Positions 33,272-41,600 of a DNA stretch of 64,000 nt are shown one piece after another. The translations under genes were made by a program, and so were the position numbers. Under the pieces are notes generated by a model. The model was not told the origin of the DNA, ran no database searches, and saw only the letters and a program-made list of their open reading frames with translations. Numbering within the stretch: the first letter of the stretch is position 1; each line of letters starts with the position of its first letter. The stretch comes from Oculina patagonica (Eukaryota). The stretch spans positions 12,400,001 to 12,464,000 of the forward strand of contig NC_135761.1 of the NCBI RefSeq assembly GCF_052425735.1, given 5' to 3'.

Positions 33272-34221
33272 ACTTTAGTTCTAACTAAATCAGCTTATTT
33301 CTCAACTTTTTTTCTGATATTTCAGAATGACACCATGCAGTAGGTATCATTTGGAATTGTCACCAAAAAGGGTTTAGATGCTAATCGCAACTTACCGGTA
33401 TGTAACAAAATTCAAATTATGGCTAAAATATTGTTTCTATTGTTTGTTTGCTTCTTTTCTTTTAAACTTATAAAATTGTTTTATTTGTTATTGTTTTACC
33501 CGCACTTGAAAGTTACACAAAAGCATGTGAAATTAACATTCAGCAATGAATGGGTTAAAACATTTTGTTGAAAGTTTTGAGCTAGCCCTTAGAACTTTTA
33601 AAACATTTGAGCCAGAAGCATTAGTTTCATTACATTTTTAACAGCTTTGTTTCAAGGTCTTAAACTGGATCCACTACACGCAAACGCTCATGATCAAATT
33701 TCGGTACTGGGGGAGCTGCAGACCCCAACTTCCCCCCCCCCCCCGCACCTTGTACGCATATGCTATGCGTGGAGGAGGGAGGCCTCAACTGGTGTCTAGG
33801 AGGCCAGGGGTTCGTTTCCGGGCGGGGACTTAGATTTTTTTGTTTGTCCCATGCTAGTGTCATTGTTGAACAATTATAATTCATCTTTATTATTTAAATA
33901 TCACCCAGCTTAAAATTTACCTTTTTTATTATTATTTAGTACATAATTGATGATTTAGACATTGCTGATCCTAGCAGAACTAGTATGCAGGACGAGTGTC
34001 TTTTTTATCAACCTAGTAAATGCCCCCCCTCACCACATGTCTCTCGAAGCTCAGTTGGTTAGGGCACCCTTGGAACTGGGATCTGGGAGGCCATGGGTTC
34101 AATTCATGTTGGGACTCAGATTTTTTCTTTGTCCCATGCTTGTGTCATTGTTATACAATTCATCATCATCAATGTCTTTAATTTATACATTATCATGAAT
34201 GCCAACTGGTCAGTCTGCATA

Positions 34222-34745
34222 CCGTATTTACTTGAATAAGTGCCGCCGCCCTCGAATAAGTGCCGCATTTAGAGCAAAAAAGTTAATAAGTGCCGCCCCC
34301 GAAAAAGCGCTGTAGTCCCGATGCGGCGCTTATTCGATTAATTCCGTATAACTAAAAAAACACTACAAAGCATCTCTAACACAGTATTGGCAAATTTTTT
34401 TCATCAAAAGCGATGTTCTTCAGTTCAAAAAGATTTATTAAAGTTCTCTCAGAATTCTTGCAATACGCAGCTCTGTTGTGAAGGCCTTGCTTAAAATTGC
34501 AGTGACATTTTGTTAAAGTGCCAGAAGGGACGAATGGTGACAATCAAGAGATGCTCCTGTTAGTTACTGTAAAATTTTCGTTCCGATATAAGATATACCG
34601 TTAAAAATTAAAAGAAAAGATTTCTTTGTCGCGTCCAATTTTCAAATAAGCGCCGCCCTCAATTAAGCACTGCCCTCGAATAAGCGCCACATCTGAGGCA
34701 CGAAAAATTCAATAAGCGCCACGGCGCTTATTCGAGTAAAAACGG
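34222..34745. mobile_element. pogo/Tc2-like MITE
   Basis: TIR CCGTATTTACTTGAATAAGTGCCG / CGGCGCTTATTCGAGTAAAAACGG, TA flanks, internal AATAAG(C/T)GCC repeats. Confidence 0.8.
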
Positions 34746-35098
34746 TATGGCTAATTTTTCTGAGAAAAGATTAATTTTGATAAAAAAATAATTTTGATAA
34801 AATAACTTCTGTTCCAGATTTTTATGCAAGGAAAGCCATTTCTGATTTGCTGTGAAAGCTTGCCATTCACTTCATCTGGTAATGCAATATTTTTTAATAA
34901 ACCATCTGAAAGCAATGGTCACACTACACATCTCCGCGGTCTGGCCAAGACCTGTATGCGGCAAGTGCACAGCCTATTAACTGTGGAGTGTTAGGGCTCA
35001 GGTTTAAAGCAACGTTATGGTTTGCCTGGTAAAAGGGGGGTTGTTGCCTGGAGTAAAGGGCAGGCAGGGTCTATGTGAGACCCTTGCGCCTAGCTAAT

Positions 35099-35143
35099 GC
35101 CATGCTGATGAGTCCTAACAAGGACGAAACAGCTGTCCATGCC
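35099..35143 (+). ncRNA. Type I hammerhead ribozyme, copy 1 (catalytic core intact)
   Basis: GCCATG-CTGATGA-GTCC(TAACAA)GGAC-GAAAC-AGCT-GTC^CATGCC. All conserved core nucleotides are present; predicted cleavage after 35137. Confidence 0.9.
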
Positions 35144-35434
35144 TGCCACTCCACGGATATTAGGCTGTTCACATGTGTACAGGTCTTGGCCAGATCGCTG
35201 AGATGTGTAGTGCCACCATTGCTTTCAGACAGTTCATCATGACATATTTATGTCGTCACACGTGCATTAGCCATTAATTTGGTTATTCCACATCTCCTTA
35301 CGCATTGCCAAGACTTTACAGTCGCAGCCACAGCTCCAAAATGTTTTTATATGGAGCTGGCATTTAAAGCAACCTTCAGGTTTGCCACTGGAGTAAAGGG
35401 CAGGGTCTATGAGAGACCCTTGCGCCTAGCTAAT

Positions 35435-35479
35435 GCCATGCTCATGAGTCCTAACAAGGACGAAACAGCTCTCCATGGC
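35435..35479 (+). ncRNA. Type I hammerhead ribozyme, copy 2 (core mutated)
   Basis: GCCATG-CTCATGA-GTCC(TAACAA)GGAC-GAAAC-AGCT-CTC-CATGGC, with CUGA changed to CUCA and GUC changed to CUC. Confidence 0.8.
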
Positions 35480-35777
35480 TGCCACTCCACGGGTAACAGG
35501 CTGTGTGCATACGTACAGGTCATGGCCAGACCGTGGAGATGTGAAGTGCCACTATTGCTTTCAGATTGTTCATTATGACATATTTATGTCATCACATGTG
35601 CATTAGCCATTAATTTGGTTATTCCACATCTCCTTATGCATTGCCAAGACTTTACAGTCCCAGCCACAGCTCCCATATGTTTTTATGTGGAGCTGGCATT
35701 TAAAGCAACCTTCTGGTTCGCCACTGGAGTAAATGGCAGTGTCTATGATCTTATGTGAGACCAATACGTCTGGCTAT

Positions 35778-35822
35778 GCCATGCTGATGAGTCCTAAAAA
35801 GGATCAAACAGCTGTCCATGGC
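35778..35822 (+). ncRNA. Type I hammerhead ribozyme, copy 3 (GAAA box mutated, cleavage triplet intact)
   Basis: GCCATG-CTGATGA-GTCC(TAAAAA)GGAT-CAAAC-AGCT-GTC^CATGGC. Confidence 0.8.
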
Positions 35823-37914
35823 TGTCACTCCATGGGCAATAGGCTGTGTGCAAGCGTTCAGATCTTGGCTAGACCATGGAGATGTGTTGTGTGACCACTG
35901 CTTTCAGATGGTTTATTATGCAATATTTTTGTACTAAGTAATATGTAAAATAATGGACAGCCATAGAAGTTGGTTCTATATAGTGTCCCTATAACCAATA
36001 GTAAATTTATTAGGTTGTATTTCCAATATAAAAATTCTTAGAAACACTCACACTCTGGGTACCGACAAAGCATTGAATTAAAAAACTAGCCACCCCCATA
36101 TAACCTTTGCAAAAGGGAGCACAGAGAATGCAGTCTATAACTAACACAACCAGTACATATTTTAAGAACTCTTTATTTTTAAAGGCATCATTCTAAGGTG
36201 TAGTTCTTGAAAGTGGAGTATAGAAGGATTTAATATTAAGTTAATGCCAAGGAAAGTGTATTAGAAATGAATTTATATTATTGCTGGGGATGACACTAAA
36301 AATACATTTTTGTGGCACTTTTAGTATATTTACTAGTTCATCTATCAGTATAATCCCACTAATTACTGAGTATAAAGTTTCTAATTTTCCTGATCTAAAG
36401 TAATTTATCACCATAAAATAACAGAATAAAGCTGTTTAGAAATATCTACATGTCAGATTGAGATAGCTTGGAATAACCCTACTGCCTTTTAATTGTGCGA
36501 GGACAGTTTGATTCAGGTCCAATTATCAACCTTTGAAGTGCTAAAGTGATTAAATTGTTATGACAGACTAGCTAAATTGAACAGTAGTTCAAAACACATA
36601 ATCTAGTAGTATCCCTTTTCTAAAGTTGCAGAAATAAAAATAAACCTCTCCTTTCATTTTGTTATCTTAATGCACTGAACATTTAATCCTCATCACAATT
36701 ATGGCCTTAGGGTATCAATAGCCCAAAGTAAACAAGCATGTTTTGCACTCCACTTCTGGTCCCCAAGACCATACAGTGTTGTCTTCATTGACGACCAGAA
36801 GTGGAAGTTGCTGAAAAAAAAACATCAGTTAACTTTGGCTAGCAGAAGAAAATTATATTTTAGTGACTGTATTAATAATTTGCATTGCAATCTGTTAACA
36901 AGGCACATATACTTGAAATAAATACATCTCTATTCTATTTAATTCTTATTTTACATCTCCAGCATATAATATATTATACAAATTAAGATAATCACCTTCA
37001 AGATTTTCAGAAACTTGATAGATTCCATTTTTTCATAGGCATATATTTGCAGTATAAACTCTTTGCACCCAGGATATAAGAAATTCAGTTAAAAACTTGC
37101 ATTAATAATAGATTTAAAACATATAAAAGTAAAAATATCATATGTATAGTTTCTGATAAGAAAATATATTATTGTACATCCAAGGTAAATATATGATGTT
37201 TTCTGGATTGAACATCTAGTTGAGTTAAATTGAGAAGGCTGTAATAAAGCCAGAATATTATTTTACTTGATTGGCATGTTGATGATTGTTACCGGTACCA
37301 ACAACAGCATGACAATAAATTTGCTTATTCATTTGGAAGTGCACAGTTCCACACTGATCAGTGTCTTAATTATAATTATTCTCATTTACTTATGACTTGA
37401 ACAGATAAAAATATATTATACATCCACAATAACAATTAATTATAGTAAAAGTAAATCAGATACATTCATTTGAGGATTGAAATATTTCAACAACAAAAAT
37501 AATGGTATGATTAAGTATATTTTTGATAGTATGTGTTCTTCTCAAAACCATTATTGCTTACAGTGACAATGCAGAAATATTGTGACAAGTACAAGAGTCA
37601 CAAGAGAATAAAACTTTTTTTTGCAATTTCAATGTCTCAGAAGACAGAAGTACTATAGGGGGCAGGGAGAGTTAATTTCAAAGTTTCTGATATGGCAAAG
37701 AGGTAATCCAGCCATTGCGTTTGTAAGTTCAACAATACTGCAAAGAAGCCTGAAAAAAAAAATGGCTTCAACAGAATCCCACTGATGCCCTGCTTCTTTG
37801 CAATGTGGGTAAAACTGCAAACATATTGATCTTGCACGTATGGTGTTTGCACTCATACTTAGCAGTGAACATTTGCCACAACATTAACTGTGTATTGAAA
37901 AAAAGTGTTCTTAA

Positions 37915-38613: not shown

Positions 38614-41600
38614 CTAACTACTATCATAAGCACAATATACTTTGTTTTTCCTCGGTGAGGGAGACAGTGAATGGTGTCTGGGAGGAGAATCCCCAGTAAA
38701 AGAAGTTCTAACACCACTACCCTGATCTTGCCGTGCCTCTTGTATATGCTGCTGTTCTAAGAAGTTGTCCCTCATCACTGAACGCGAGAGTTGTAACCTT
38801 TCGTTGACAGCTGGGACTGGTATCCCTCTCGTTTTCTCTTCAATAGCTTCATGTGAAGCAGCACGTTGCACAGATTTGGAATCAACTGTTTTAATCTCAT
38901 AAGGATTTTGAATTTTCCTATTTGAGCCAATAGTAGGACTGCTGCTTGTTACAACATTTTCTGTCACCACCTGTTGTCTGTCGGTTTCACATTCTGCAGT
39001 AAGCCTTAGTATAGGTGGTTCGCATTCAGCGGAAGTGCTACTAAGAAGTTCTCTGTCATCTTCATTGATTACAGAGTGAAGTTTCTCAATCAATTGCTTT
39101 GTCAGTTTAACATTGGACTCCCTCACATTAGACGTTTTGTTTCCACCCTGTTTGCTTTCTTGAGCTTGCACACTTGTAAGAGCCGAGATCAAACTTGTGT
39201 CTTGAGGAAGGGTAGTACAATTTGCCCGTCGAGTAAGCGAAAGCACAGATCTGCCTGATTTTGCGGATTTGTTGGAATTTTGTGAAGTGTTTGATCTGGC
39301 ACTGTTTAGCCGTGAGGTGCTTTTAAGCCAGTTCTGACTGACTGACCTGTGAAGGTTTTTCATACTTGAGGAAGCAGCACTAGATGCAATCCAGGGGTCT
39401 CTCAGAGCCTGCTCTGCTGTCATGCGCTTCTCTGGATCTACCACAAGTAATCTGTCAATGAAGTGTCTCGCATGATCTGACACATCTTTCCATGCCTAAA
39501 AGGAAACAAGTTAAAACATATTCAATTACTTGAACCCCGTGAATTCCCAAAGTAAACATTGCTATCAAGTAGACTGGTGATAGAAAAAGAGCTCTTTGAG
39601 CCACAACTGAATTTTTTTATCCAAGTTTTGAACAAAGTATAGTTTTCATTCCTTGAAAATATATGACCAGCAGGTGATTCAAACATTTCTTTGATGCACA
39701 TGATTACAGATAAACTGCAGAATGTCTATTACACTGATATAAGACATTTTAGTCTCATGTGACTTAGTATGTCTGAGTAGCACACACTGAGTAGCATCTA
39801 AGTGGGATGCAGGAGGTAGTGGGTTCGAATCCCAGGAGACAAATTTTTTCTTTTTTTTTTTAACCCGTAGCACTAAAATGGTTTGTTTATTATATCGCTC
39901 TGTAGATATGCATTGCAGAATAATTTACATGTTAGCCGTAAATAAATTTATCAGAACATATAGACTGATTCAGGTACAAATGTACTTGTGCTGTTTCAAC
40001 TGAAAAGCTTTTCCTTTTCTTGCAAACAAGCAGCCACGCACTTGATTTTAGCCAACGCTCTGGTTTCTAGATAGATCCATCGTTAATGAAGCTTATGTGA
40101 AACCCGATTTAATTTTCGAATGCTCCTCCATGTAGGACACTAGCTCGAAAGATAGACACGAAAGTCATCGATCGATTAATGCTGATTAATCGCTCTCAAT
40201 GTTCACTTTTTTGGAGGTCGATTACTTAATTCTACATGTAATTGTCGGCCATATTTTGTTTCTTTGCTTCTGGTTTTTCTTGTAAACCCCTTTAAATTTT
40301 AAAGACTGCCTTTATATAGCCGCTTTTATATGGCCGCCTTGCTACACTATTTCTACAAGTATATCTGCTGGTCAGCGGAGTTGCAATGAGAAGTTTACAG
40401 ATGATGGACCAACCGACCAACCATGGCTACCCACTATACTCCTGAATAAATTCAGTCGTAAAAAGAGGACCTCATAAACTAAAAGAGAGAGACTTAAATG
40501 AACACAAATTGGAGGGAAACTTACTCTAAAAAAAGAAAATTAACACGAAAGAGGTAAATTTTTAAAATGAAGGAAATTTTTAAACACAAGGAAGCGCAGT
40601 TTGTGGCAACAAATTTTATTTCAACATTGAATGTTTTTGGCAAATCATTGTCAGATGTTGAACTGCCCTTCTGAAAACAGGCATGAACTGAAAATATCAT
40701 AAACAATATACCCGTAAACTATGTCTGGACGGGATCCTGAATTTGGGGTAGTATTAACGGAAATTAAGGTCAGGGAAATAAACATTTCACTTAGTTTATG
40801 TCGACAAAAATTTACGCTGCTTAAATTAACATGAATTTTATAATAATATTTTTTTACAATTTAAGGTATTCAGAACTTGAAAAAGGCCCATCCAGTTGTC
40901 CAGGGCAACTGGATTTTCTACCAGGCAATTAACATTCATGCTCATTTGCCTGATGGGCAAGGGCCCAGGCAAGATGTCTGCTGTCTCTATCATATAAGAA
41001 TAAAAACAAAGTAAACTAAGCATGCAACTGCCCCAGGCCAGTTCAAATTCCTGTAGGTGATCACTGACCACGAAAATCCAAAGTATCTGAACAGGAGAAA
41101 ACACAGAAGTTTACAGTCATCATGCTAATGATACGCAAAACAGAGTATATCACAACAACAGGAAAACTCATTGAGTCTCACTTACGAGATGAAGCGGCCG
41201 CCGTACAGTTAATCAAACTACTTTCCTTCACCCAGGATGAACAGATGGAACTTACGGAACCAATCAGATCGTCAAACTGATTTACCACCAATGCAGGATA
41301 ATATCATGCAGGAAAATATTCCAAGTCTGACTAACAAAACGACATCCCGTACAGACTGTGGGATCATATAGATCACTACACATCTTCGAAGGCATGTATC
41401 GGTATGTGTTTAATGGACACTCATAGCTGTCGCACTGCTCAGTCCGGAATGTTTCAATTTGATATTTCAGAGAGCTAATTGGTTAATGTTATAACTGGAT
41501 TGAATTTTTATAGTATATACTGCACTGCTATGAGTATTTGCCTGCTGTGGTTATAGCTGCGATCATAGCATGACCTGGTGGTTACCTCAAATTAATCTCC

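Follow-up and report, generated by a model that had tools for sequence, protein, structure and literature searches.

The 64-kb window analysed here (64,000 nucleotides of the Oculina patagonica genome, contig NC_135761.1, positions 12,400,001 to 12,464,000) contains a 1,023-bp non-coding insert that is made of a repeat of ~336-343 nt, each unit of which carries a type I hammerhead ribozyme motif (Table 1). Tandem Repeats Finder reports a period of 336 with 2.6 copies and 86% matches at window positions 35063-35932, and the insert, which is surrounded by AT-rich non-coding DNA, has a GC content of 0.47 compared with 0.39 for the window. An exact 13-bp direct repeat brackets the insert and constitutes its target-site duplication; by a rough estimate, a repeat of this kind would lie by chance so close to the two ends (a few tens of bases) with a probability of ~1e-4. 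The insert is laid out as an inverted 5'-truncated piece followed by ~2.7 tandem units, and when the unit was compared with its own locus by BLAST, the inverted piece was recovered as a minus-strand match to query positions 10-111 at 80%. Both outer ends correspond to one sequence point, ...GGTTTATTA, and the 3' end lies ~100 nt beyond a ribozyme cleavage site. There is no long terminal repeat (LTR), the ends of the insert being inverted and tandem pieces of the unit itself.

At the Rfam gathering thresholds, the sole match of the whole window is to Hammerhead_1 (RF00163, curated gathering score 34 bits) in the first of the three hammerheads (copy 1; 35.1 bits, E 4.6e-5), and a permissive scan of 34000-37000 adds copy 3 at 32.8 bits and copy 2 at 21 bits, both in register with the repeat. 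The core of copy 1 is complete (CUGAUGA, CGAAAC and GUC), the second pair of its stem I is a C-C mismatch, and cleavage is predicted to occur after C35137. Copies 2 and 3 fall below the cut-off because of core changes that are visible in the alignments: CUCAUGA replaces CUGAUGA in copy 2, with loss of the essential G5, and an additional G-to-C change breaks its helix III, while CAAAC replaces GAAAC in copy 3, with loss of G12. Helix III has 2 bp and is capped by the tetraloop AGCU, an arrangement typical of the hammerheads of invertebrate retrozymes (Cervera & de la Pena, Nucleic Acids Research (NAR) 2020; PMC7229834). Retrozymes of 220-350 nt that contain type I hammerheads and yield circular RNA have been described in stony corals and other cnidarians (PMC7229834).

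A first-pass annotation of this stretch, made from the letters alone, had placed type I hammerheads with CUGANGA boxes at 35105, 35441 and 35784. A motif is indeed present in each unit, but the box at 35441 reads CTCATGA and only the core of copy 1 is intact; likewise, the search with the Hammerhead_1 model that the annotation proposed recovers copy 1 above the cut-off and leaves copies 3 and 2 below it. Other observations in the annotation agree with our results. The tandem spacings of 336 and 343 nt match the positions of the Rfam hits and the period given by the repeat finder, the position that it predicted for cleavage is the one expected from the motif (GUC, then the putative cut), and all of the complementary word pairs that it listed are present at the expected places. 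The coordinates that it gave, 34895-35918, correspond to within one base to the insertion boundaries set by the 13-bp repeat.

Table 1. Features of the hammerhead repeat insert, in window coordinates.
Feature	Position	Strand	Evidence
Left copy of the 13-bp target-site duplication, ATGCAATATTTTT	34882..34894	.	Exact direct repeat of 35918-35930
Inverted 5'-truncated piece, the reverse complement of unit ~10-102; its outer end, ...GGTTTATTA, equals the right-end terminus	34895..34990	-	BLAST and alignment
First forward unit, 5'-truncated (unit ~215-336, with a ~20-nt internal duplication), up to the hammerhead 1 cleavage site	34995..35137	+	Alignment; BLAST q251-336 at 92%
Hammerhead 1, the sole intact core (CUGAUGA, GAAA, GUC; predicted cut after 35137); one C-C mismatch in stem I	35099..35143	+	RF00163, 35.1 bits
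Full unit 1, 336 nt, between two cleavage sites	35138..35473	+	Repeat finder, alignment and BLAST; circular fold z = -3.3
Hammerhead 2, inactivated (CUGAUGA to CUCAUGA, and G to C in helix III)	35435..35479	+	RF00163, 21 bits, under the cut-off
Full unit 2, 343 nt, 86% identity to unit 1	35474..35816	+	Alignment and BLAST
Hammerhead 3, inactivated (GAAA to CAAA, last helix II pair altered); cleavage-site strand intact	35778..35822	+	RF00163, 32.8 bits, under the cut-off
Terminal partial unit (unit 1-~101), ending at the fixed 3' terminus of the family, ...GGTTTATT(A)	35817..35917	+	BLAST and alignment; terminus in 55/70 genomic matches
Right copy of the 13-bp target-site duplication, ATGCAATATTTTT	35918..35930	.	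Exact direct repeat

The repeat unit appears to be highly structured and non-coding. When the unit at 35138-35473 was folded as a circle, a value of -99.1 kcal/mol was obtained compared with -79.5 +/- 5.9 for mononucleotide shuffles (z = -3.3), which agrees with the strong self-complementarity noted in the first pass. A consensus fold of five full units contains 106 pairs, in which the molecule is closed by the ribozyme's stem I, and positions ~46-79 pair with ~121-180 to form a long arm. The only open reading frame (ORF) of at least 90 aa inside the element, of 99 aa, has no Pfam match, and no module resembling a transfer RNA (tRNA) was found in or near the insert.

The hammerhead fold itself was assessed in an alignment of 12 hammerheads drawn from four repeat families of the same genome, namely the family to which the window copy belongs (the window family), a sister family found at the locus L066 (see below) and two abundant families from a genome-wide RF00163 search. 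Standard pairs occupy 98.6% of the cells of this alignment, and four pairs are changed on both sides across the four families. For example, GUCC/GGAC of helix II becomes GGCC/GGCC and GACC/GGUC, and GCCAUG/CAUGGC of helix I becomes CUCUG/CAGAG and CAGUG/CACUG. The observed values were reached by none of 500 shuffles, and pairing dropped to 22-39% when the partners were slid against each other. The hammerhead fold of these repeats is real, and covariation supports helices I, II and III.

A search of the 529-Mb assembly returned at least 101 matches to the window unit, and when a younger copy was used as the query, 70 matches were scored out of 240 candidates. Of these 70 matches, 55 end at query positions 389-393, which is the same terminus as in the window, and the starts scatter over positions 1-282, indicating that the family has a fixed 3' end and variable 5' truncation. 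Copies of the family are scattered over at least 14 large contigs and differ in their flanks and duplications. The unit-to-unit junction (336 to 1) is present in every insert, and the inserts span 0.3-2.7 unit lengths; in several, more than one ~340-nt unit is complete and no ORF separates the units. Target duplications of 10-13 bp flank four independent inserts (the window insert, 13 bp; L003, 12 bp; the L007 group, 12 bp; and L026, 10 bp), several of which are arranged head-to-head with an inverted 5'-truncated copy beside a forward copy. For this count L007, L008, L009, L013, L014 and L015, which are near-identical and have common flanks, were treated as one event, and only duplications of at least 10 bp were considered, since those of 8 bp (L016 and L023) could arise by chance at such a length. 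A young subfamily comprises independent copies that are 95-99% identical to one another, and the ribozyme core is intact in ~12 of 19 independent copies of the family. Because no reverse transcriptase (RT) or GIY-YIG ORF is present in the insert or in 30 family loci, the element is non-autonomous at most. The first-pass annotation had described a protein-free replicon family, with other copies to be sought across the genome; a dispersed, non-coding, ~340-nt hammerhead family is indeed found in this coral genome (at least 70-101 matches, depending on the query), but the term replicon, in the sense of viroid-like RNA-to-RNA replication, finds no support.

The genomic copies also bear on a different origin, in which the insert would be a DNA transposon with terminal inverted repeats (a miniature inverted-repeat transposable element) or a plain satellite containing hammerhead-like words by chance. 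The ~96-nt inverted ends together with the target duplication would fit the former, and the tandemly repeated interior would fit the latter. However, many copies lack the inverted arm, the arms that are present vary in length, and the duplications vary from 8 to 13 bp. Moreover, the scattered 5' ends opposite a fixed 3' end, the spread of copies over at least 14 large contigs and the covariation of the hammerhead fold between families count against such an origin, and we regard it as extremely unlikely.

Several other observations were made on hammerheads in this genome. In L004, a 1.6-unit insert of the young subfamily, the first hammerhead (1456-1512) is intact and the second (~1795-1843) has ~5 substitutions in 45 nt, a divergence far above the 2-5% of the remaining copy. 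A rough first-look count gave 69,566 hammerhead candidates genome-wide. The most abundant canonical hammerhead scores 50.8 bits, is identical in dozens of loci (L031-L056) and is found in non-coding arrays, either head-to-head or 554-nt tandem, with 99-100% identity (for example, L034:1398-2484 and L054:1402-2899); a further hammerhead family, scoring 47.3 bits, occurs in ~377-379-nt tandems (L058).

Taken together, the structure of the insert and of its relatives leads us to conclude that window 34895-35917 very probably represents one ancient retrotransposition event of a non-LTR retrozyme, i.e., a non-autonomous Penelope-type retroelement. Among insertions of Penelope-like elements, truncation at the 5' end, partial tandems, target duplications of variable length and a neighbouring copy that is inverted and 5'-truncated have been described (Craig et al. 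2021; PMC8557442), and because the inserts described here match in all of these features, their architecture supports a Penelope-like mode of integration for the family. Penelope-like elements had been proposed previously as the mobilisers of animal retrozymes (Cervera & de la Pena 2020; PMC7229834), and a 2026 preprint (Li, Clavereau & Pollet; 10.64898/2026.07.22.740005) makes the same case on the basis of co-occurrence and the homology of pseudo-LTRs in Xenopus. The suggestion of Penelope-like mobilisation made in the first pass is strengthened by the insertion architecture.

Since Penelope-like elements carry hammerheads in their pseudo-LTRs and most of their copies are 5'-truncated (PMC8557442; 10.64898/2026.07.22.740005), the insert might instead derive from an autonomous Penelope-like element, as a solo pseudo-LTR or as a fragment heavily truncated at its 5' end, with no separate family involved. 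In favour of such an origin, a closely related hammerhead segment directly adjoins a 5'-truncated Penelope-like copy at L066. We nevertheless consider it very improbable. The 336-to-1 junctions recur in every insert, several inserts contain successive complete units with no ORF between them, no RT/GIY-YIG ORF was found in any of the 30 family loci, and the neighbouring element at L066 has a different, minimal hammerhead of its own near its 3' end. In addition, the sampled GIY-YIG loci lack the tail of the family (...GGTTTATT).

Those loci were drawn from ~860 GIY-YIG candidates in the genome, of which 150 were scored and many of which are in head-to-head pairs. The one ORF that was checked (L064, 541-1770) has the YIDD form of the RT YxDD motif, a C2H2 finger and, at the C-terminus, a GIY-YIG domain. 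Among 30 GIY-YIG loci, the sole match to the unit or its tail was at L066/L068. The matching segment was considered as the Penelope-like element's own end and was rejected, as it is a separate sister retrozyme abutting a 5'-truncated copy of an element with a C-terminal endonuclease. A Naiad-type element, with an N-terminal endonuclease and a canonical hammerhead before it, was likewise considered for L066 and rejected, as the RT motif of L064 lies upstream of its GIY-YIG domain.

The sister segment is 253 nt long (L066:994-1246, corresponding to G000:C10:17882957-17883209, with a duplicate on C1154). Its hammerhead differs from that of the window family by a compensatory change in helix II only, and the similarity extends over ~150 nt of flanking sequence. 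The sister family comprises at least 15 loci that are 99-100% identical and all have the same terminus, some of them 339 nt apart in tandem or head-to-head, and it has probably been active recently. At L066:1246/1247 the sister terminus is joined exactly to the 5'-truncation point of the Penelope-like copy (1247-2165), in the same orientation, and just outside the inverted arm there is a (TA)n microsatellite. This join could be the product of a template switch or of adjacent insertions by coincidence. On C1784, too, pieces of the sister family lie within ~0.5 kb of a GIY-YIG match. The minimal hammerhead of the adjoining Penelope-like element is at L066:2096-2135, ~40-65 nt before its 3' end, and reads CUGAAGA ... 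GAAAC GUA, without a helix III loop. Just upstream of this retrozyme and Penelope-like complex, three tandem-like pieces at L066:600-900 end in GGATTCGAACCC and have A-runs before them; they look like tRNA-derived fragments of the short interspersed element type.

The window copy is 78-88% identical to the young copies, and the four copies of segment 1-102 within the insert are 75-83% identical to one another, an internal divergence that points to one old event, after which each copy decayed by roughly 10%. Given one competent core out of three and this level of decay in each repeat, the window locus is most likely a dead relic that is unable to release monomers by itself. Judging from the three cores, a transcript of the array could be cut once, or twice if the core of copy 1 acts on the site of copy 3, and neither outcome would yield a monomer.

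This second cut is central to another explanation, that the locus is a live source of self-cleaved circular RNA of ~340 nt, possibly by way of a double-hammerhead fold in which the copy 1 core cuts the copy 3 site. The score of copy 1 above the Rfam cut-off is in keeping with such activity. By inspection, copies 1 and 3 have a perfectly palindromic helix III (ACAGCUGU), which would allow an extended intermolecular helix III to form, and amphibian retrozymes with dimer-dependent cleavage provide a precedent (PMC7229834). On the other hand, the loss of G5 from copy 2 and of G12 from copy 3 would leave at most one or two cuts and a ~680-nt product rather than a monomer, and the ~10% decay per repeat and the near absence of the copy's own words from RNA-labelled runs (shares of 0.02-0.10) also argue against it, making a live source here very improbable. 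For the young copy, shares of 0.3-0.57 were obtained in runs of three organisms that are guessed to be RNA. Fragmentary contigs from four guessed-RNA runs cover most of the young unit at word depths of tens to hundreds, some with 1 mismatch over ~150 nt and depths of 75-137, and are of a kind that cannot show ends, strand or circles.

Several of these results weigh against our interpretation of the insert as a relic of a retrozyme of Penelope type. Two of the three ribozymes in the window are dead, and the live one exceeds the cut-off by just 1 bit and has the stem I mismatch. Outside the ribozyme covariation is thin, with four compensatory pairs in five sequences. No autonomous element with the 3' terminus of the family was present among the 30 sampled GIY-YIG loci (150 of ~860 candidates scored), and no run recorded as RNA contains the sequence, the contigs that cover the young copy coming from runs guessed to be RNA.

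A life cycle that would account for the inserts can be outlined. First, tandem units would be transcribed, and the type I hammerhead of each unit would then cut after GUC to give monomers of ~340 nt. These would be circularised by a host RNA ligase, giving a compact, highly self-paired RNA. An autonomous Penelope-like element would next provide, in trans, an RT that has a GIY-YIG nuclease and that would start complementary DNA synthesis at a nicked AT-rich target. Synthesis would always begin at one and the same RNA position, ~100 nt 3' of the cleavage site and in a predicted unpaired stretch, and would run through the cleavage junction, uncut or religated, over 0.3 to 2.7 unit lengths. Finally, resolution would often add an inverted 5'-truncated copy upstream and would leave a target duplication of 8-13 bp. 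We infer rather than observe cleavage, circularisation, the identity of the RT and the nature of the template (circle or uncut multimer). Two features of the inserts are relevant to this last choice and to the start site. Since every insert crosses the 336-to-1 junction to reach a fixed point, the template must have been uncut or religated, i.e., a multimer or a circle. In the consensus fold, the fixed terminus lies in an A/U-rich stretch that is unpaired, at the far end of the long paired arm.

If the template is a ligated circle, the inserts of this family and its sister could be the trace left in the sequence when Penelope-like machinery reverse-transcribes a ribozyme-made circular RNA in a site-specific, target-primed, rolling-circle manner, a proposal that we advance tentatively and consider possible but rather unlikely. 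If it is true, the inserts would record a rolling-circle reverse transcription step that is so far a hypothesis for animal retrozymes, and the L066 junction could be a template-switch product that names the RT. That abundant circular RNAs of animals can arise from hammerhead retrozymes has been recognised recently, and the way in which the retrozymes are copied back into DNA is unsettled. Although the locus is nothing new in kind, the family provides clean landmarks (the target duplication, the inverted arm and a fixed RT start downstream of the cleavage site) that link animal retrozymes to Penelope-like integration through architecture; the argument of the 2026 preprint, by contrast, is based on co-occurrence and on the similarity of pseudo-LTR sequences. 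The choice between circular and uncut multimeric templates is now testable in a coral with near-identical, probably active sister copies.

Two further features lie near the insert. At window 34642-34740, ~150 nt upstream, 17-nt repeats (TCAAATAAGCGCCGCCC, 2.8 copies) and the palindromic words AATAAGCGCC...GGCGCTTATT probably represent another small repeat element. The nearest sizeable ORF is at window 38614-39483 on the minus strand, ~3 kb from the insert; it encodes 289 aa, the start of which weakly matches the final ~30 positions of the protein kinase domain at E 4.6e-4, short of the Pfam cut-off, and the ORF may be the final exon of a kinase gene.

Comparison with known hammerhead-containing elements places the family among the metazoan non-LTR retrozymes. 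These are characterised by a type I hammerhead, tandem units of 150-450 bp, the lack of an ORF, a GC content below 50%, a target duplication of more than 4 bp and a highly self-paired unit (PMC7229834). Like the members of this class in Acropora millepora, jellyfish and sea anemones, the window family has a type I hammerhead with a 2-bp, tetraloop-capped helix III and tandem non-coding units in the 150-450-bp range, with GC below 50% and duplications above 4 bp; it also shares with them a compact predicted circle, a cnidarian host and the presence of Penelope-like elements in the same genome. The unit of ~336-345 nt is longer than that of the A. millepora retrozymes (220-245 nt), and in contrast to metazoan retrozymes with arrays of up to 62-mers, the arrays of this family are short (0.3-2.7 units) and the window copy is decayed. 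Penelope-like elements and their non-autonomous derivatives (PMC8557442; 10.64898/2026.07.22.740005) resemble the family in having a hammerhead in the part that is repeated, as well as frequent 5' truncation, partial tandems, variable duplications and inverted repeats around the unit that arise from a neighbouring inverted 5'-truncated copy; unlike the autonomous elements, the family has no RT/GIY-YIG ORF and its repeated unit is the whole element. The satellite 2 hammerhead repeats of newts and axolotls (~330-350 bp) are similar in unit length, type I hammerhead, short palindromic helix III and tandem arrangement, but amphibian satellite 2 forms huge arrays (~120,000 copies) with dimer-dependent ribozymes, whereas the family here consists of ~10^2 pieces in dispersed short inserts. 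With plant LTR retrozymes and viroid-like circular RNAs it would share a hammerhead-processed, circularised, non-coding RNA, as predicted here from the sequence; the plant LTR retrozymes differ in having type III hammerheads, LTRs, a primer binding site and polypurine tract, 4-bp duplications and mobilisation by Gypsy elements. RNA-to-RNA replication has been proposed for the plant elements and viroid-like RNAs, and nothing here points to such replication. The ribozyme sequence, searched for literally, gave no match in the searchable literature or the NAR 2020 supplement, although figures and repeat libraries may still contain the family. The class itself has thus already been described, stony corals included, and the window family is a further retrozyme family of that class.

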